NCBI GenBank assembly: GCA_002104905.1
Contig: MCFE01000070.1
Span: 1 to 64,000 of the forward strand
Direction of reading: 5' to 3'
Length of the DNA: 64,000 bases
Source: Basidiobolus meristosporus CBS 931.73
Taxonomy: Eukaryota > Fungi > Basidiobolomycota
Made by a program: the position numbers and the translations under genes. The notes under the pieces were generated by a model. The model was not told the DNA's origin. It made no database searches and was given only the letters and a program-made list of their open reading frames with translations. Every line of letters begins with the position of its first letter. Positions within the stretch are counted from its first letter, which is position 1. Shown here piece by piece: positions 5,934-18,777 of this stretch.

Positions 5934-8554
5934 CTAGAACTTGATCTCGAACCTGGTGTCCATGGAGAGCTCCAATTCGGTGATGGTCAAGAGCTCCTTG
6001 GCAGCATCGTAAGTCCAGCTTCCGTACTCGATACCGTAGATGGTGACTCTCTCGGGCTTCCTCTTGAGACCCATGACCACGACCGACTCGAGGTTGGCCC
6101 CGGTGTAGTAGTTGAATCTTCCTTCGTAGCGGATGCCCCGGGTGTCCGCGGTGTAGCGGACCTCGGAGAAGTAGCCCCTCACGTCGGTGCTCTCGCCGTC
6201 GTCGAAGTACATGCTACCGGTGGCCTCCTCACGCTCGTCCAGCGCGACCAACAGTTTGAATGGGTTGTGGGCCATGTCGGCGATCACCAGCTCCGGCTTC
6301 TGAATGGGCACCACGTGGCCACCACGGATGTGAAGCGGGATGTCCCCGTCCAATGGTGCGGGCAGCAAGTGGGTCTTTCCTCCCTCGACCTTCTCGTAGT
6401 TGTAGAAGTTGTACCAGACCCCCTTGGGGAAGGCGGCCTCGACCGCGTCGGCATTCTCGGTCAATACGGGGGAGACGAGGATGGCGGGACCGAGGAGGAT
6501 CTCCTCCTCGTTGCTGAGGAAGCTTGGGTCGTCCTGGAACTCGAAGGGGAGGGGTCTCCATACGGGCAAGCCGCTGGTGTGGGCGTATTGGAACTGGGTG
6601 TAGATGTATGGCAGAAGGGAGTACCGGGTGTTGAGCGCCTTGCGACTGGCCTCCGCCACTGACGGCCAACGGTAGGCCTCCTGGGAGATGGCCCCCTTGA
6701 CGTTGTGGTTACGGGAGAAGGGGTAGAAGGATCCCAGCTGCATCCAACGTAGACACAGCTCCTCCGTGGTGTTACCGTTGAAGCCGCAGATGTCGGAGCC
6801 GACCAGGGGGACGCCGAACATTTGGAAGCTCAGGATCCCTGGGATGGAGTATCTCAGATACTCCCATTTCGACGCGTTGTCCCCGGTCCAATGGGCCTCG
6901 TGGTGTCCGGAGCTGGGGAAGGTGGACCGTCCCAGGACGAAGGTACGCTTCTCGGGAGCGATGTCCAGCAGGGCCTTGCGTGTGGCGATGGCCTCCATAT
7001 GGCCGAAGAGGTTGTGCACCTGGAACTCGGTGAGGCCGTTGTAGTGGGTGGCTTCGGTGCTGACCGTGTGCACCGAGAGGTTCCCGTAGAAGTTGGAGAT
7101 GTTGTAGGCAGGGTTGGGGAAGGTCTGGGGCACGTTCAGGTCATAGTCGGGATCCAACCACGGGTATGGCGGGGTTCCGGTGCGGTTGGTGCCGCAGGAT
7201 CCGACGCAGAAGGAGGATGGCTCGTTCATGTCGATCCAGAGTCCATCGACCGGCACCTTGGAGTGGAAAGTGGAGATCTGCTTGCTCCACCACTTGGTGG
7301 TGTTGGGATTGAACCAATCCGGGAACCCGGTGTATCCGGGCCACACTTGACCAATGTAGATCGAACCATCCGGGTTCTTGATGAAGGTGTTCTGCTCCAC
7401 GCCCTCGGTCCAGGCCGGGTAGTTCTCGTCCCTCTCGATAGCAGGGTCGATGATCAGTACGTAGTGCTTGCCCTCGGAATGAAGCTTGTCAATGAAGGTG
7501 CGCATCACGTCCGTGGGATATCTCACCGGGTCGGTGGTGAAGTCTCTGTACTGATCCATGTAGTCGATATCCGTCCACATGGTTTCCAAAGGAATCTTGG
7601 CTTCGGCGTAGGAATTCACGACGCCCTCGACGATTTGGATGTCGTGGTAGCCGTAGCGACACTGGTTGAACCCAAGCGACCAGTAAGGCACCTGGAAAGG
7701 TCTACCAATGGTGGCAGTGTAGGCATCGATGACGTCGTACGAGTTCGGCCCCGCGAAGAACGAGAAATCGAGAACACCGCCGAGGGTTTTGTAGGCGACG
7801 GTGGCGTTTTCCAGGAGCACGTCCATCTAGAAAGGAGAGACATTAGCTTGGGAAGAAATCGGAATCTCCCGGACTGCCAGCTACTTACCCCGAAACTGTT
7901 GAGAAGGGAGACGCCGTGGGCCTTGCCGTCACGCAACTCGATGTAGAACGGATGGGTGCCGTAAATGTTCTGGTTGATGGGGTCGGCAGCGTCACGAGCC
8001 CACATCGGCTGAAGCGTGTACTCGGGATTTCTTCTGAAGTTGGAGACCACCTCGCCGATTCCGTAGATGTTGGCGTCATGGGGAAGGCGGGAAGTCAACT
8101 CGCGGTACTCCTTCTCGTAGATCAACGGGATCCCGGTGGTGTCGAAGATGGTTTCCCCGGTGTCCTTGCGTCGGATCCAGAAGGAGAAGGGCTCGCTCTC
8201 GTAGTGGAACTCCAGGAGACTTTCGGCGGAAACCTTGGGGTTGAAGGAGTGATCAGGTGCGAGGAGATCCTCCGGGACCTCGAATGCGTTCTCATTTGGA
8301 TCAAGGATCTTCACATGGATTCTCGCCCTTTCCATGGTCACTTGGACCTCGAGGTTTTCCGAATCCTGCCCGTATCTGTTGCACGGCGGCCCATCCAACG
8401 TGAGACCGATCACCATGGTGTTTTCGTTGACGCTGACGTCGGTGGTACGGTAACCGGGGCACACAAGCTCGGCTGTCCTCTCTATGGGACTGGCATCGGT
8501 AGATACGCCGAGAAGGGCCAAGGCGAGTGTAAATGGCTTTAACCACTTTGGCAT
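5934..8554 (-). CDS. Secreted GH31 alpha-glucosidase (~852 aa; exons 8554-7889 and 7826-5934)
   Basis: Signal peptide; catalytic WIDMNEP and HWTGDN motifs; 62-nt GTAAGT...GCTAAT...TAG intron (7888-7827) joins LLNSFG|MDV in frame. Confidence 0.95.
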
Positions 8555-9866
8555 TTTGGTGGGAAGGGGGAGGAGGGGGATTGTTTGTTGCCATGGCCTG
8601 TGTTTCGGACGAGGCATTTATACGTTTTGACCGACTCCGGTCAGCCCGAATCAACCTCGATGAACCAGATGGCCACCGTTTGGAACAGCCTACACCCGTC
8701 CATTCGGCCTAAAGAGAAAATCCTAACCGCGAACTGGGCCAAACGAGCAGACTGGGCAGGCTCCGCTATCGCATGGATGTCAATGTAGTGGACTTCGGCT
8801 GGATGAGTTAGGCTTGGTGACCAAGTCAACCTCGTCGGTTACGGAATTAATTTCACCTTATTCGTACACCGCACTCTCCAAACGGGACTCTCGGCTCCAG
8901 CAGGTGGTGGCTGAAATGTCTCACTTCATTCCAGGAATCGGGAAACTCAGCAAATCCCCAGGTGGTACGTTTCCTAGTATGGGGCCTTGGTGCGTAGTGT
9001 GGCTTGCTTCACTACGAAAGGTGGAATTTTAAGCCGAAACTATAGTTGTCCCAGCCTGGACATAATTGGCATGCGTCTTGGAAATGGCAGCTGTTTCATA
9101 TCCAGCGAGATGCCCCACCCTGATCTTGGACGCCCCTTCACAGCCAGTATTTCCCACCTCGCTAGTGTGTATGCGAGGAGTGCGGAAGGGGAGTGTGCTC
9201 TCCGCTGACAAGCAAATAAACGAATAAATCCAGATTCAAGGTTAAAGCTGATTTCATGACGATATCTAGATGGTGGCAATATCTAGATGATTTCGATCTT
9301 TGGATGATTACCGAGAACGAGATATAGCTGACATTTAGCCGATTCCAATTCCCTGGTGTTTTCGCGCACGATATCTGTCCCGGATAGGCAACCCGATGCC
9401 CGCATCCGGCTGGGGTGGCGCAGAACTCGATCAGCTGTGGCCAAACCCACTTAAGAAACTCGAGAAATTCAATACCCCACTTGACCACACCCGTCAATTA
9501 ACACTGGCCTGGGATACCGGCCGATGCCGGTAGATTGGATTTTGCAGAGTATGAAGCTTGCTCAAGCATAGTTAACAATTCACTAGAAATTTAGTCGAGA
9601 TTCATTTGCCTGCATCGAAGTGCTTGGTACGAAATATTCACAAACAGTTACACAACTCTATGTCTAAGACATGATTGAAGAAGGATGGCATTTTGCCTAA
9701 TCGGCACATAATTTAAATGCAATCATGGCTACCCAAATTATATTATGAACACTATAGATACGTTATAAAAAGAACTGGTGATTTATTTCCATTTTCAAGA
9801 GTTGTACCTGAAGAAAGAGATATGTAAGCAACTTGAAAGATGGAACAATAGTGGTACAGATAAGAA

Positions 9867-9945
9867 TCAGATAAGACGTAATTAGGTAGCTGTCTATTTT
9901 TCGTCAGTATCCCAAAGGATTACAGCCAAATGCCTTAATCATCAT
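9867..9945 (-). ncRNA. snR13: Box C/D snoRNA copy 1 (snR13-like)
   Basis: ATGATGA...CTGA; guide AGGCATTTGGCT antisense to LSU rRNA AGCCAAATGCCT; second element GCTACCT; terminal stem AGAA/TTCT. Confidence 0.85.
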
Positions 9946-10098
9946 TTTCTAGGGATTGATAGGTTCGATGCTTACTCTGAATGTTTGCTCGCCGGCATGT
10001 CTTCGATACGGATGTTTGAGCATTAACGATCCACCTGCAATACTGTGGAAAGAGTTTAGCAAATGGTGAAAGAATAAAGGGTTCGTTGTGGGATATGC

Positions 10099-10177
10099 TC
10101 AGATAAGACGTAATTAGGTAGCTGTCTATTTTTCGTCAGTATCCCGAAGGATTACAGCCAAATGCCTTAATCATCAT
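10099..10177 (-). ncRNA. snR13: Box C/D snoRNA copy 2 (snR13-like)
   Basis: Same core; cUUCGg internal hairpin; terminal stem TGC/GCA. Confidence 0.85.
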
Positions 10178-10313
10178 TGCAAGTCGGTGACGGAAATGCA
10201 ACCTACCTAGTGACATGAAAGCTAAGCGGGAAGTGGGGAATCGTACAATCACAACGGCGGCCTATCCAGATTGGAATTAGATTGGTGTTTGGTAAATTTA
10301 TGAGAGCGATTTA

Positions 10314-10392
10314 TCAGAGTAGACGTAATTAGGTAGCTGTCTATTTTTCGTCAGTATCCCGAGGGATTACAGCCAAATGCCTTAATCATCAT
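10314..10392 (-). ncRNA. snR13: Box C/D snoRNA copy 3 (snR13-like)
   Basis: Same core; 9-bp terminal stem AGCGATTTA/TAAATCGCT. Confidence 0.85.
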
Positions 10393-10543
10393 TTAAATCG
10401 CTTGAGTTCGAGATACTCTACCTTAATATGTACAGTATGTAAGGAGGTCATGTAGTTTGCTTTACAGTGTGGATCAACATATTGACAATCTATGGAAAGG
10501 AGTTGTTAGCATTGAAGTTTAGGTTGAAAGGGTCTACTGCAAA

Positions 10544-10623
10544 TCAGATATAGACGTAATTAGGTAGCTGTCTGTTTTTCGTCAGTATCCCAAGGGATTA
10601 CAGCCAAATGCCTTAATCATCAT
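10544..10623 (-). ncRNA. snR13: Box C/D snoRNA copy 4 (snR13-like)
   Basis: Same core; terminal stem CTGCAAA/TTTGCAG. Confidence 0.85.
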
Positions 10624-10773
10624 TTTGCAGATCACCAACTACTGAGGTTTACTTACTTTTTACAAGAGACGGCCACGACTTCCACGATTATATATACACC
10701 ATTGGAAATTATAGTACAAGTCACTAAGAAAGAATTAGGGGTTAGTTGTCGGTCAAGTGGAAATGATCACTGC

Positions 10774-10853
10774 TCAGATATAGACGTAATTAGGTAGCTG
10801 TCTGTTTTTCGTCAGTATCCCGAAGGATTACAGCCAAATGCCTTAATCATCAC
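10774..10853 (-). ncRNA. snR13: Box C/D snoRNA copy 5 (snR13-like)
   Basis: GTGATGA...CTGA; UUCG loop; terminal stem TGC/GCA. Confidence 0.85.
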
Positions 10854-11004
10854 TGCAAGCGGATCGCACATGTGAATTCGAGCACTTACGTTTTTTGTCG
10901 GAGAGATATCCGGGACGAGGAGAAGCATCCGCAAATGTGTGCTTTTGTGGAGAAGAAGGATTAGCAAAAACGATCGAATGATGTTCGGTTGCGTATGCGT
11001 GTTC

Positions 11005-11084
11005 TCAGATAAAGACGTAATTAGGTAGCTGTCTATTTTTCGTCAGTATCCCGGAGGATTACAGCCAAATGCCTTAATCATCAT
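11005..11084 (-). ncRNA. snR13: Box C/D snoRNA copy 6 (snR13-like)
   Basis: ATGATGA...CTGA; UCCG loop; terminal stem weak. Confidence 0.82.
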
Positions 11085-11514
11085 TGTGTACATACGTCTT
11101 ACAACAGCAAGAATTCATGATATTTACCTAGCAGACGGGATCACACATGGTAGAATCGGATATGGATGGTGAGTGAAGAAAGAATTTCATCACAAATCTA
11201 TTTATATTCCGAACTCGACTCTTCTTGGACGCGAAAAAAAACCATCTTCAACGCACCCCTGTCATCAAGCCTTATACGAGGGTGATGGATCCCTGGAAAT
11301 CAACCATCTGGATTTGGTGTGGATTTGGTGGAAAGCACGGCATTGATTTGAGGTTTGCATGTTTATTAACGTTGATAATATAAAGATAGCAAATCTAGAG
11401 ATACAGTAAAGTATTTTCAAAAAGCTTAAGAAATACAAAACAAAATATACAGCCAATAATATTTATCAACCTTCAAACAGCATTGAATAGATGCATCCCT
11501 TCATGTGGCTCAAA

Positions 11515-14500
11515 TCAGGATTTTTTTGGTCGTTTCAATCCGCTTTCAATGATGAATGTTGGCTCATTCTCTTCGAAAGTTCGCTTCTTGGGTTTGGGTG
11601 CGCTCATACGTACACCACTGGTCTTCTTGACTTGTTTGAGCTTACGTTGGTTAGCCTTCATGTTCGGGGAAGTGTCACTAGCAGTATCAAACTCAAGGCT
11701 ATCGTCAAAATCTGCGGATTCTGAATCATCTTGGTAGTCGGCAACTGAGCCACTTTCATTCATTAGCTCGAGGAACTACAAAATATCAAGCGATGCTTTG
11801 TTAAGATCAGGGTTCTCTGTACGAGCGTCCTACAGGTAATGCCACATTACCCTTTCACTTGTTTGTCTAAGATCCGCGTGATCATCCGAAACATTGCTCG
11901 GGAGCATCAGTTTGTCCCACGATATTGGCTGGATTGCGCGTGGTTGCCGGAAGGCTGGCTTATCCTTGTGACCAGAATCCGAGGGATTAAAGCTTTGGCA
12001 TTTCCTATATAAACAACCGGCAATTAGACCAATCATTCATGAATTTTAACAGGAGCATCATGGCTTGGCTCGCAACTTACGCTTCATTGAGTGAATATGC
12101 GACTTTTAAATACTCTTTCAGTGTGATCAAAAGCCCCATGCAGCCAGCTATTTTGCGATAAACCCGGATTTTGGGGGGCACAGCTAGTTGTAAGACTTAG
12201 TTTAGAGGGGTGACAATCAACAAAAATTGCTGGACAAATACCATCGATGCCGTGCGGTTGCGACTCTATCTGATGCATGACATTGGTTCCAGTCACAGAG
12301 AGTACTTGGTTGATAGTATAGATAAGGTAGAGCACTTCCTCGAATGTTTTGTAATTTAGCACCGAAAGATTCTCGCAGACAAATTTACAAAATCCAAGGT
12401 CAACCTAGTCGAAAAGTTGTCAGTGTATGGACGATGATCAAGTTCGGAGAATCATAAAATACCGCAGATTCAGCAGTTCTCTCCAGATCGAAATCAAATG
12501 TCTTGATCAGCGATTTTAAAAAGTCGTGCCTGCGCTGACGTTTCTCCTTCACAAGCGTATACATGGAGTTCAAAAGCGCCTCTGGTTTAGTATCGAGTTT
12601 AACGATGGCATAGCCTGTATCGACGATCACGACAACGGTAAGTATGCGATTGCAAGTATCATTGGGAGAATACGTGTACCTAAAATGGGCTTATCCTTAG
12701 TTATCTGTCTTTGATAGTCATACGCGGTGCGAACAGCGTCGACGTTCCGTGAATGGATAAACGAAGGGTATTTCTCATTCAAGTGGCAATGCATTTTGTA
12801 GGCTTTTTCCCGGAAGTTCTTTTCGTGACTAGTTTCAAGAGCTACAATTGCGGGAACACACTAAATACAACATTCAAGCTAGCGTTAGAAGTGGCGGCCC
12901 GCAAAACTCGGTATCATCGAAAAGGACCTTGAGAGGATGGACCAAGCCCTGCTGGATAATCTGACTGACAACATCAAGCGCCAATTGTCTTAGCGTATTC
13001 TGCTCAGAGAGCATACAATCAAGGATTTTGTCAAGATAACACTGCATGAGAGAGCTGCTTACACTGTATGGCCAACAAAAACATTAATATCGAAGGGGTG
13101 GTTGAAATTGCAGTACCACATACCCAGCTTCACCCAATTCTTCAGCATTTCCTACCAGCACCTTAATGTCAACCGGTGCGTCTTTGTCATGCTCTAATAT
13201 GATCACGTAAATGTCAGCTGGAGGCCTTATTACATGGGCTAATTTCATGCCATGTTACCTTTTTCAAGAAGCTCTGATTTCTTCTGCTCAGCCAAGAGGA
13301 AATCCAGGTATACTTTCAGCAGTTGAGTCTTGAGTTCAATCGAGTTGGAGGCAAAGATGTCTCCCATCAACTGTTGGCTCGACTCGGCAAGCATTAATTT
13401 AGGTTGTGCCATATAAATATAACCTGGGTTACGCATGAGTGTGATTCTGTATGGTCCTATAAATATCGGACACTAACCTAAGCTCTGAATTGCCACAATG
13501 AGAATATTGGTTTGAAGTTTCGCAGACGCAAAGGACATGATAAGCTCAAACATGAACGGAAGGATGGGGCCCTAGCGAAACAGTGGATCATAAATCAATG
13601 CACCATTCAAGCGTAGATTCAACAAGCAGAGCTATTTACCTTGTGGATGGCATCCAAGTCGGATTGCACCTCTGTTACAGCTAGAGTTAATGCCAGACAA
13701 AATGACGATACCAAAAGAAATATCACATTACCGGGTATTTCGCGTCTCTTCTTGTCATAATTGAAGTGTTTACACAACAACCCCAAGATCATTAGAAGTC
13801 TGACAACGTTTCTGGGCGAGCTCAGATCAAGTCCTTTTTTGATCCGCTCAATCTCGGCAGTAAGTTTCGCTTACATAATGTGTTAGCCAGGGCTCATTTC
13901 TATGGTTCCAGTTTAGGCATACCTGAGCATGAACGCAACAGTTTCGACAGACGTGTATAGTTATGGGTTAGTCGATCTACTATTGCGCATAGGCAAGGGA
14001 CAACTACCAACAAAACCTAAAAAAGTCCAACCTTTAGTACCACGACATGCATATCATTGATACATACATTCCACCGACCATCTGAGAGCTCTTGGACAAG
14101 AGTGTAAACAATTCCTGTTCAAGTCCCTGAAGGAACACAGGGTCCGGGTTCTTCAACAGAGGCACAGAGTTGGAGTATATCATCAGAATAAAGTAAAGAA
14201 TCTTTTGGTCTTCAGCCTATTGAATATAGGTTATAATTTGTCCCAGAAAAGAAAACTGTAGCGCATCATACCGATGTGGATGCCTTGGTGTACGGATGCA
14301 GGACGGTGACATGATCGATCAGTAGCTCCGGGGCAGCCTTGCTAAATAGGTACAATGCATTGATACAATGCACCACAGAACCCTAACAAGTTGTTAATCT
14401 ACAACAGTACTCTCATTTCCACGGGCACAAAATTACTTGCCTTGGAGCTGTCTTCTTCGACGGAGAGGAGGTGTTCCATTAAGCAATCAACCATGCACTG

Positions 14501-17500
14501 GCATATTACAACAACACCTCGATTAAGCTTCCCCTCATTTTTCTCGATAATCTGAAGATTTGTGTGGGTTAGTAGCTATTACAGTTGAAGCTTCAGGTGA
14601 AATGTATTTACTTTCTGGATTAGAACTCCAAGGCTTTCGCCTCCACTAGCGCTCAGCATCTTGACCACATCTACAATGATCAGGGTGCGAGCTAAAATCT
14701 CTTTCTTCCCCGTGACCGACATTTTGGAAAACATTAGGCTTTGATACTGGTCAGGCGTCAATTCCTCCAACTCAAAAAGTCCACTTGATTGGCACTTGAA
14801 CGGTCCAAACCAGATTTCTTGTAGAGTCTTTAGAGCCAGTTCCTACAAGGATTCGCTTCAATTAGAGCCTTCGTCTGGGGCATTCATTTTGCCAGCGAGA
14901 ACTTACTTTAACATTAGAGTCTTCATCATTCACCCGATTTAAGAATTTGAAAGAGATGTCCACCATCATGTCATGGTCTTCACTCTTAAGATATATCTCG
15001 CGTAGTAGCTTGATGACTCTTTTACGAACATTCAACCCGGTATCCTGATGATGGGCGAGTGTTAAGCGAAAGAGATAAAGTTCAGAGTTATGATGGGGAA
15101 TTACCAAGATTCTCTCACTGATGACTTTGTAGTACTGCTGAGTAATTTCGGGTTTTTGGGAAAGATATCTGCCCACCAGATCAATAGCAGCATCACGTAC
15201 TGCAGGTGATAGATCTTGCAAACGATTACCGATGGTGTGACGTACATTAACCTTTGAAACGTGTTAGTCTTGAATATTTGGTTTGGACCAAACATGGCGT
15301 ACCTGACTCAGAATCTCCGGATGAGAAACCACCACTTGGCCTAATGCTTTTAGCGCTTTGGTTCTAAAGGCTACGACGGACATTTCCAAAGCAGCAAGGA
15401 TCTTGGAGAGAAGTACGTCAAAGCTCTGGTAAAGTCCTTGGCGAGTGCCAAGCAATTCAGCAACAGATAGAATGGTGTGACGGTCAGAGAGTTTGCTTTT
15501 CAGTAAAACACAAGGTCAGGATGGGGATATAGGCGGATCTGAAACAAGGCTATATGCTTACTCTCGTCTTTTCTCTGGTTTATCGGTGCTATTCAAAGCG
15601 AATTCTCGTAACACCTCAGAGAACTCCTTAATGGCATCTGAGCTCCATGGGGCGTCGTCGTGTCTACCAGCTTTAGAGGCTTGAATAAAACCAGATGCTG
15701 TGGCACTTCCCCAGTCGCAGAGGTAAAATTGCTTGGCACACTGTAAACGCGAGTCGGTCAGTTGTGAAGGGATTTCCAGGAAAATGGAGGGGGGAGGATT
15801 CGTACCTCTATACCAGGATCTTCCGAAGCCAGCCCCTCCAAATAATCTAACAAGCATTTTTGATACTTGAATAGATTTTGGATAAGCGGCAAGGGGGTTT
15901 CGGCAGTAATCTACGTATGAGTTCGTGCCGATTATTAAAGTGGTCAGGGGTCGGAAAAACGACACGTTGTATTACCTCTCCAGTAGGGATTTCAAGTAGC
16001 CCTCGTGCTCTGTTCTCTTGAGGTTCACTGCCCAGGTCAAAGCTCTCTGTTTCTTCTTTCTTTGGAATGACCGAGTTCATCGATTTCTTGATTTTTGCTG
16101 CAATAATCCCCAAGTAATCAATTGCCATTGACTTGGTGTATGTTTCGGCTCTTTTATCGTCGATGTATCCAACCTATTGTCGTATATCAGAAAATCTATG
16201 ACATTGAAAGGTAGTCAACTGTGGCTGCGGTACCATGATTTTACTGAAAATTCGAACAACAAGCTCGGCACCAGGCCATTCGGGTAGGTTGAGTACAGTC
16301 AAAACATCTTCCATGAAGTTATCCAAAAGCGCCCGATATTCCGCCTCGTTGGAGGATTTGTTCTTGGTACATCTGTTCCACGGGAAATCATGAGAAAATA
16401 AGCGCACCCAAATGGAAATCTGGCGATACTACCTTGAGAGAAGATATTTGAAGATATAGGAGGCGTTGAAATTGGCAGCGTCAAGTCCACTCTTACACAG
16501 GCTGCCAAACTAACAATCAAGCAGTAAGGTTAAGATTCGAGTCCCTTAGACACCCATCGACACTGAAAATAGGGTTACTTTCTCTATCAGCGCTTTCTGC
16601 GATTTCTGTAAACTTGGGCCTTCCTCATCCGGCTCTTTTTGCGTTATTTTCTCCAACTCCTCACTGCTGAATCCGTTGCGAACGATGTGATCAGCACAGC
16701 ACTGAATCAACTGCAAAAGCAAAGCAGAGACCATTTGAATGGATTTGCCATCCACAAGTCTAAAAGAAGTTGTTAAGCAGAGCCCCGATTCAGTTCGGTA
16801 AAGACTACGTACTTGAATTGTCGAAGATTGCGCCGATTCGTGGGTAATTTGATGAGGGACGTTAGGATCTCCTCCAATATCCAAGTGCGCTGATTCGGAT
16901 AGCATGTGAATATAGACCGCAGAAGTCCAAGCGCAGCTAGCTTAATGCCTTCCAAACCAGCAGGAAGAATCGAGGAACTCTCAACGAAAAACGGCGCAAC
17001 AGCGAAGTACCCCACAGTGATCATAACACCATCCGACAGCTCTTGGATATGCATCAACGAGTAGAGCTTGTTGAAGAAAGTGGTTAATGGCAGGATCAGC
17101 GAGTTCAGTTGGCGCTTGATAGTGGTGCTCTTCAGTGCGCTCTGGACCAGCGATTGATCGGAAGCATCCGCCTCGGCCAATTCAAATATCGTAAATAAAG
17201 TCCCCTTCAGCTGGTTCTTGGCTAGATTGAGACTGGATATAATGATGTCTTCGGGATATAGTTGTCGAGTAAGGGTGCCTCCGGTCATCAGGGAGAATGC
17301 ACATATAGCAGCATCAAGGCCGTGCTGAATACTCAGAAGCTTTTCCTCGACTAGATTAAGTTGATGTTGCTCACTGCTTATTTCCTCATCGTCATCGTTG
17401 GGTTTATGAGTGAAAACATCAAGGTCTTCGGCTGCACGAATTGATCTCTCGAGTATTTTCAAGAATCGACTCAAATCTTCCACATTGACATCGCCGAGTT

Positions 17501-18777
17501 TGTTGTACTGGGCAGCCTTACTGATCAATAGCGTCACTCGAGAAATGGTTTCTCTTGTTAAAAGGGCATTCTCTGCAGAGCTGGATGAGGAGATAAAGAA
17601 CTTGAAAGCATCGGTGCTCGTAGTAGAGATGGATGTGTCTGGAGTTAATGAATCTTCTGCCGCAAACATGTCATCCAAAAAGTCGACGAGTCTTGTATAA
17701 GCAGCTAAATATGATTAAATTTGTAGGATGAGTCTCTATCTATTAGTAAAAATTCCTACAAGTATTGAACCTTCCGATGGGTTGCTAAGCGCTTTTTTGT
17801 TTTCGTTGTAATCGGCGTTTCTCTTCGGAGGAGCCTTGTTGCTTTTATTTTGCGGTGGCTGTTTGGCGTTGCTTTGGACCGTTTGTTGCTTGTGTGTCTC
17901 TTGCCGATAAGCTGGCTTTCCTTCTCTACCGGTTTCTGGCACTTGATTGTCAAGGATGTTAGTAACTGAGTTTTGTGATATAACATAAATACAATTGAAG
18001 CATAAACATACCATGATTTGGCTGGGGGACCGGCTGTGGAATTGATTGTAAGTTTGGTTGTGGAGGTAGCCGTTGAATTGGTTGTGGGATTGGTTGAGAA
18101 TTCTCTGCCAACTTGGAGTCCTTGAATTTGTGAATGAAACGGAAGGCATTGCTGTGACTCGGTATCTGCTGCTGGTAAAGTTCTATTATGTCGAGACTTA
18201 GAGACTGCTCAATAAAGTGCCGTATACATTGTATTGAATTACCAGGAGGTACTGGAGCGTCCCCATCGCGATGGCAATAACCCATTACGAGCTTTGCTAA
18301 TAACGGATGAGCCGGAGGCAAGGCTTGGGGGTTCTCAGGCTGGGATGTCGAAGGAGGAATGTGAGGAGTGCTGAATTTTCTGTAGAGGCATTGAAAAATA
18401 AAACTTAGAAATGCACGAGATAAACTGGTAGAAAAGGCACCTTTACAAATATGACGCGTCAACCTCGTTCAAGAGATTCGCGATTGTGGCCACGTAACTG
18501 TTGGCTTCGTTTAAGCTACAGTTCAAGACATTATCCATGTATTCGGTATCGCCAGGGGTGCATAGAGTGAATTCATCGTGTACTATCTTTAGTGAGGGTA
18601 TCTCCTTTATTACTGATGCAGGAAGAATGGTCAGTATAGCATATATAAGGACTCTTCAGAATTATACACACTTGAAAAAGAAGGAGTCAATGATGCCATA
18701 GGCCAGTATTTGAGTGCACCGCGTACATCAGTAGGAGGGAGAAGCCTTCTACTTGTGTCCTCGCTCTCTCCTTCCAT
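11515..18777 (-). CDS. SCC2: Cohesin loader Scc2/NIPBL/Mis4 (many introns; exon structure only partly resolved)
   Basis: Exonic motifs [91 protein letters not shown]; acidic/basic C-terminal tail ending at 11515. Confidence 0.92.

Follow-up and report, generated by a model that had tools for sequence, protein, structure and literature searches.

Spliced non-coding host genes with one small nucleolar RNA (snoRNA) per intron, poorly conserved exons and conserved snoRNAs are known in animals as Drosophila Uhg and mammalian GAS5/UHG (SNHG). Single-family tandem snoRNA arrays also occur among the Drosophila isoforms, and SNORD115 and SNORD116, both orphan snoRNAs, form single-family arrays in the SNURF-SNRPN host transcript. 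Neurospora crassa has UHG-like non-coding hosts (clusters I-V) with a single box C/D snoRNA in each intron, and reverse transcription PCR (RT-PCR) demonstrated that they are spliced (Liu et al. 2009, PMC2780460). The present work concerns an array of six snoRNA copies on the minus strand of contig MCFE01000070.1 of Basidiobolus meristosporus CBS 931.73, of which the first 64,000 nucleotides (nt) were analyzed (hereafter, the window). The array occupies an unannotated 3.1-kb gap flanked by two minus-strand genes: Scc2/Nipped-B (stop codon at 11515) and a GH31 alpha-glucosidase (5934-8416, start at 8416). A 630-aa ORF beside the array was 100% identical to a protein of B. meristosporus CBS 931.73. 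This locus is likely to be an independently transcribed, non-protein-coding snoRNA host gene with six introns and one snR13-type copy in each. It is predicted to measure about 1.4 kb unspliced and 0.4 kb spliced, and to yield six near-identical box C/D snoRNAs as its only useful products.

The putative host gene resembled those of Neurospora in being fungal, in containing only box C/D snoRNAs, one per intron, in its short open reading frames (ORFs) and in its snoRNA-to-splice-site distances; the N. crassa snR13 homologue, CD1, is intronic too (PMC2780460). The Neurospora clusters mix snoRNA families and their splicing is proven by RT-PCR, whereas the Basidiobolus array repeats a single family six times (nine times in Basidiobolus ranarum) in predicted introns. 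The features listed above for the animal hosts were also found here (with splicing predicted), but the gene belongs to another kingdom and its array is much smaller. Unlike the orphan SNORD115 and SNORD116, the Basidiobolus snoRNA is predicted to have a canonical ribosomal RNA (rRNA) target. This kind of gene is already known and involves no new mechanism; the locus is notable only for its copy number and for the contrast between two species. For an early-diverging fungus (Zoopagomycota), it supplies a gene that the annotation lacks. It would also extend the occurrence of non-coding hosts whose introns carry one snoRNA each, and of the tandem amplification of one family in such hosts, beyond animals and Dikarya.

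Predicted introns and exons

An earlier reading of this DNA (the sequence-only reading) had placed every snoRNA copy in its own intron, with a branch point, an acceptor, a short exon and a donor in each spacer. All six intervals that it listed as introns were exact GT..AG sequences of 154 (starting from 11095), 166, 167, 160, 164 and 168 nt, with the donor hexamers it had given, and the internal exons (2 to 6) had the claimed sizes of 52, 67, 68, 55 and 67 nt. The branch motifs were all present, 13-19 nt upstream of the acceptor, and the acceptor was the first AG past the branch motif in 6/6 introns. The D box was separated from the branch A by 31-43 intervening nt, which agrees with the 32-44 nt previously reported. 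The distance from donor to C box was 29-36 nt in introns 2-6 (43 nt in intron 1), and that from D box to 3' splice site 50-63 nt; the position of the snoRNA with respect to the splice sites was uniform across the six units.

These signals were compared with those of 33 real introns (51-122 nt, median about 64 nt), obtained by mapping the Scc2 and GH31 proteins (P0121 and P0001) exactly onto the window. The donors of these training introns were rather degenerate, and the position-matrix scores of the predicted donors, branch sites and acceptors fell inside their range. A blind search for the best acceptor, branch and donor combination in the five internal spacers recovered the coordinates of the sequence-only reading in 4/5; in the fifth, the same donor was found with the acceptor shifted 8 nt downstream, to 10035. 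The summed score of the five spacers was 95.3 bits, compared to 39.9 ± 16.3 bits in dinucleotide shuffles (0/1000 reached 95.3) and 66.0 bits for the reverse complement of the spacers. When 2936 segments of 150 nt were taken at random from the window, each spacer outranked all but 0.1-3.9% of them, and five random segments never added up to 95.3 bits. Since the scores are in the normal range and real introns measure 51-122 nt, a host intron (160-186 nt) would correspond to an ordinary B. meristosporus intron of about 65-80 nt plus a snoRNA of about 85 nt.

The features of the predicted gene, all on the minus strand, were as follows. The putative promoter (11199-11262) comprised the ACAGGGGTG block, a T8 tract and a TATA box, TATAAATA (11206-11199), all identical in B. 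ranarum within an otherwise diverged spacer; the TATA box had already been noticed at about 11200 in the earlier work. Exon 1 (11128-11175) was pyrimidine-rich with a conserved CACTC; its 5' end (about 11175) is a guess and corresponds to a presumed transcription start. For intron 1 (10942-11127, 186 nt), the sequence-only reading had preferred a start at 11095, with 11102 and 11127 as alternatives. This first choice was abandoned in favor of 11127, the most likely start, because its donor scores best (8.2 bits, vs. 4.1 and 4.0 bits for 11102 and 11095), is kept in B. ranarum and gives an intron of 186 nt in both species. Intron 1 contained snoRNA copy 1 (C box start at 11084, D box end at 11005).

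Exon 2 (10890-10941, 52 nt), exon 3 (10657-10723, 67 nt), exon 4 (10422-10489, 68 nt) and exon 5 (10207-10261, 55 nt) were defined by the splice-site check and the blind scan, and exon 6 (9976-10042, 67 nt) by the splice-site check. Intron 2 (10724-10889, 166 nt; donor GTAAGT, branch ACTAAC) carried copy 2 (10853-10774), intron 3 (10490-10656, 167 nt; GTAAGT, GCTAAC) copy 3 (10623-10544), and intron 4 (10262-10421, 160 nt; GTAGAG, TCTAAT) copy 4 (10392-10314), which had a 9-bp terminal stem. In intron 5 (10043-10206, 164 nt; GTAGGT, GCTAAA), which carried copy 5 (10177-10099), the proposed donor held and 10043 was the first AG past the branch; a second possible acceptor AG at 10035 scored slightly higher. 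Intron 6 (9808-9975, 168 nt; GTAAGC, GCTTAC) carried copy 6 (9945-9867). The last exon (9755-9807, with a presumed 3' end) contained AATAAA at 9787-9782, about 20 nt into the exon, a position shared with B. ranarum.

Spliced models of the six-intron gene with any of the three first donors had no ATG ORF longer than 43 aa (the longest were 34-43 aa) and no stop-free run longer than 57 codons, in line with the earlier statement that no long ORF is evident. The joined exon models were used only for this ORF scan and for the comparison of the models of both species; taken singly, the internal exons (52-68 nt) offer too little sequence for a protein search. A permissive Rfam scan of 9500-11500, which covers the exons, gave nothing beyond the snoRNA matches.

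In the proposed mechanism, RNA polymerase II would start downstream of the TATA box and the spliceosome would take out the six introns. After debranching of each lariat, exonucleases would trim it as far as the small nucleolar ribonucleoprotein (snoRNP) on the C/D boxes, which lie 50-63 nt upstream of the 3' splice site. The joined exons, with very short ORFs and early stops, would presumably be discarded, probably through nonsense-mediated decay (NMD). A short ATG ORF starting at 11148 stops with a TAG formed by the last three bases of exon 1. An exon 1 ORF ending in an exon-terminal TAG (TAG/GTAA) was observed in both species (11128-11148, minus strand, in the window; 17808-17819 in the B. 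ranarum sequence, L005); this TAG may be a mere good donor context, or a built-in early stop committing the spliced RNA to NMD.

The corresponding locus of Basidiobolus ranarum

The B. ranarum orthologue of Scc2 (P0271) was 84% identical, and an unannotated 2.9-kb gap lay directly downstream of it. A sequence model of the six B. meristosporus copies detected nine copies in this gap, on the Scc2 strand, with 89-100 bits. The spacers of B. ranarum contained an acceptor, an exon of 50-71 nt and a donor in the same order, delimiting introns of 159-186 nt in which the donor was 29-39 nt from the C box and the D box 50-68 nt from the 3' splice site. The donor matrix, based on the 33 introns, penalizes GTGAGT and miscalled spacer 3 of B. 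ranarum, which was settled by eye and by the first-AG rule.

Between the two species, local-alignment scores of the spacers were at null level, and the spliced models showed no nucleotide or translated similarity. Within species, alignments above null were restricted to B. ranarum spacers R4-R6, a shorter R2-R8 match and a weak M2-M5 match in B. meristosporus. Exon sequences could be aligned neither within nor between the species. The B. ranarum modules with spacers 4-6 (L005 18636-19243) were three in a row and mutually alignable, and a putative recent tandem duplication of whole intron-exon modules is indicated for these spacers. As spacers are now unalignable, the persistence of splice signals would reflect their maintenance.

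These signals bear on the possibility of an unspliced polycistronic precursor, cut in the spacers by RNase III/Rnt1-type enzymes and trimmed by exonucleases as in budding-yeast and plant clusters, in which the splice-like signals would be unused. Polycistronic clusters are a known mode in fungi (PMC5824354), and the splicing of the six-copy array is itself a prediction from sequence. Such a precursor was nevertheless considered very unlikely: the splice signals are far above chance and recur at the same places in 15 units across the two species, amid unalignable sequence, while the minimum free energy z-scores of the 13 spacers of both species ranged between -1.1 and +1.4 and hairpins with AGNN tetraloops were absent. 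Release by RNase III had been named in the sequence-only reading as an outcome incompatible with it; no RNase III-type structure appeared in these spacers.

Upstream of the array, ATATAAATA was identical in both species within diverged sequence, and the ACAGGGGTG block and the T8 tract reappeared beside it. The context of the first donor, TAG/GTAAWTATCAT, which equals 11127 in the window, was conserved in both species about 80 nt past the conserved TATA box. The promoter blocks kept in both Basidiobolus species (ACAGGGGTG, the eight-T run and ATATAAATA; 11199-11262, minus strand, in the window and L005 17673-17740 in B. ranarum) could mark promoters of snoRNA or ribosome-biogenesis genes.

The array lies directly downstream of Scc2, on the same strand, in both species, and its introns might sit in a long 3' untranslated region (UTR) of the Scc2 mRNA, in which case the host would be protein-coding. 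However, the first 150 nt or so after the Scc2 stop codon were conserved between the species up to an AATAAA (11367-11362), where this 3' UTR ends in both and the sequences start to diverge, and the perfectly conserved TATAAATA with its flanking blocks lies about 80 nt ahead of the first donor. A host of this type was regarded as very unlikely. The conserved stretch after the Scc2 stop (11375-11515, minus strand, in the window; L005 17239-17385) was far better kept than the adjacent intergenic DNA, and a regulatory 3' UTR element is suggested.

Alternatively, the copies could be separate mono-cistronic snoRNA genes, each transcribed from a promoter of its own in the spacer ahead of it. There is a TATA-like run in exon 3 (about 10700), and putative promoters were noted upstream of each snoRNA in the Neurospora clusters (PMC2780460). 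Most spacers, however, lacked TATA-like runs, which were not positionally conserved, and promoters for individual copies leave the ordered acceptor-exon-donor pattern unexplained; this organization was regarded as extremely unlikely.

The preferred interpretation, a dedicated GAS5/UHG-type host gene as the sequence-only reading had proposed, is supported by splice signals above chance, by the geometry of the units, by the lack of a long ORF and by the syntenic nine-unit locus of B. ranarum. In both species each snoRNA lay, in silico, inside its own predicted intron with splice sites; the spliced exons had no conserved ORF, and a conserved snoRNA was accompanied by freely evolving exons. Several points weigh against this gene. 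Splicing and the 5' and 3' ends are predictions. Some single signals are weak (donor GTAGAG, branches GCTAAA and GCTTAC, and acceptor 10043, with 2.8 bits), with equally weak ones among real introns. The units stem from tandem duplication and their six or nine occurrences are not independent, so the product of the probabilities of the individual spacers overstates significance. The array is 388 nt past the Scc2 stop, on the same strand in both species, and read-through or co-transcription is possible. Lastly, the assignment to snR13 rests on a score of 17.9 bits, below the Rfam gathering score of 47.

The number of modules differed between the sister species (6 vs. 9), and three B. ranarum modules were alignable while the others had diverged past recognition. 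A broader interpretation, offered tentatively and with rather less than even confidence, is that the intron with its snoRNA plus a spacer exon may be an evolutionary module that duplicates fast and dies fast on an evolving scaffold of splice signals. Selection for snoRNA dosage would create exons and introns de novo as a by-product, and only the splice signals, the C/D-box spacing and the stop at the end of exon 1 (TAG/GT) would be kept. If so, the locus would offer a natural, datable series for the birth of introns and exons, and would show the minimal needs of splicing-coupled snoRNP assembly in an early-diverging fungus. Between the loci of six and nine units, conservation is confined to the snoRNA, the splice signals and the promoter, a clean illustration of the targets of selection.

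The snoRNA family and its predicted target

The six copies, confirmed as members of one snoRNA family as previously claimed, were direct repeats spaced at 215-232 bp, with 89% mean column identity and an invariant core including AUGAUGA, UGACGA and CUGA. The C box (AUGAUGA; GUGAUGA in copy 2) and the D box (CUGA) were present in all six, spanning 79-80 nt. The C' box (UGACGA) was invariant and the D' box degenerate (CUGU/UGUA). In the C'-D' hairpin only the loop varied in B. meristosporus, and other stem sequences were found in metagenomic relatives. The flanks of copies 2-6 showed 3-9 bp of complementarity, different in sequence in each copy (essentially none in copy 1), and the terminal stems of the B. 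ranarum copies were of 2-11 bp. Terminal stems that differ in sequence yet stay complementary argue that each copy may be functional. Tandem Repeats Finder reported no repeat in the window, because the spacers are too diverged.

At the gathering thresholds of Rfam there was no match in the whole window. Under permissive conditions, snR13 (RF01223) gave the highest score (17.9 bits vs. a gathering score of 47; E = 7.5), far below that threshold, and U8 and Afu_300 had slightly lower E-values. The Basidiobolus snoRNA and the snR13 of Saccharomyces cerevisiae (RF01223) had in common the D' guide core GCAUUUGGCU, the downstream element AGCUACCU, the C and D boxes and the predicted target. The yeast RNA is 124 nt long, single-copy and independently transcribed, whereas that of Basidiobolus measures about 80-88 nt and is multi-copy and, by prediction, intronic.

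The 12-nt guide AGGCAUUUGGCU was exactly complementary to AGCCAAATGCCT in a conserved stretch of 28S ribosomal DNA (rDNA), an oligonucleotide printed in PMC11601368 and not Basidiobolus rRNA; none of the loci retrieved for comparison contained rDNA. If D' is taken as CUGU or UGUA, the positions selected by the fifth-nucleotide rule are the second and third A of CCAAAUG. These two are taken to be yeast 25S A2280 and A2281, with the numbering checked against positions named in PMC4174444. The snoRNA is accordingly a predicted guide for 2'-O-methylation in helix 70/71 of the large-subunit rRNA, at the two adenosines that correspond to A2280/A2281 of yeast 25S rRNA. In yeast, snR13 guides A2280m and A2281m (PMC4174444).

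A canonical D-box guide was considered and rejected, as the copies differ in the sequence and length of the 4-5 nt beside the D box. Given this variability, the conserved element of 20 nt that precedes the D box more likely provides accessory pairing; it probably acts as AGCUACCU does in snR13 and not as a second methylation guide.

Neighboring genes and other fungi

Scc2/Nipped-B, the cohesin loader (P0121, 1717 aa), spanned 11515-18777 on the minus strand. It contained 32 short introns of 51-122 nt with degenerate donors (e.g. GTTCAA, GTTTGG and GTCCTT), and one GC-AG intron at 14440-14383. These introns constitute a handy local training set for splice-site models in B. meristosporus.

The GH31 protein (P0001, 806 aa) is annotated from the ATG at 8416. 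The open frame extends upstream and contains another in-frame ATG 46 codons earlier, at 8554; the N-terminus starting there (8416-8554, minus strand) was hydrophobic and signal-peptide-like, followed by a CPGY motif. The CPGY motif is typical of the N-termini of fungal alpha-glucosidases. The annotated gene probably lacks part of its 5' end. GH31 had its own TATA box at about 8620; given this box and the AATAAA of the host gene at 9787-9782, hosting of the array in the GH31 5' UTR was rejected. GH31 was also dropped as a synteny anchor, since the GH31 protein of B. ranarum nearest to it (63% identity) seems to be the orthologue of a paralogue.

At the loci of three distant Scc2 relatives, P0122 (Ambispora leptoticha), P0123 and P0124, no snoRNA copy was present. 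A pattern built from motifs of the family, run once against metagenome contigs, matched 50 loci, most of them single-copy; L041 had three copies, and L049 and L026 two each. In L041 and L049, each copy had a GTATGT before it and, after it, a CTAAC-type motif, then a pyrimidine tract and an AG. These units suggest that the snR13 family is repeated once per intron in other fungi, and the putative single-family intronic snR13 array is thus not limited to Basidiobolus. The tandem snR13-like positions, in soil and other metagenome contigs, were L041 10130-11100, L049 3440-3990 and L026 1885-2233.

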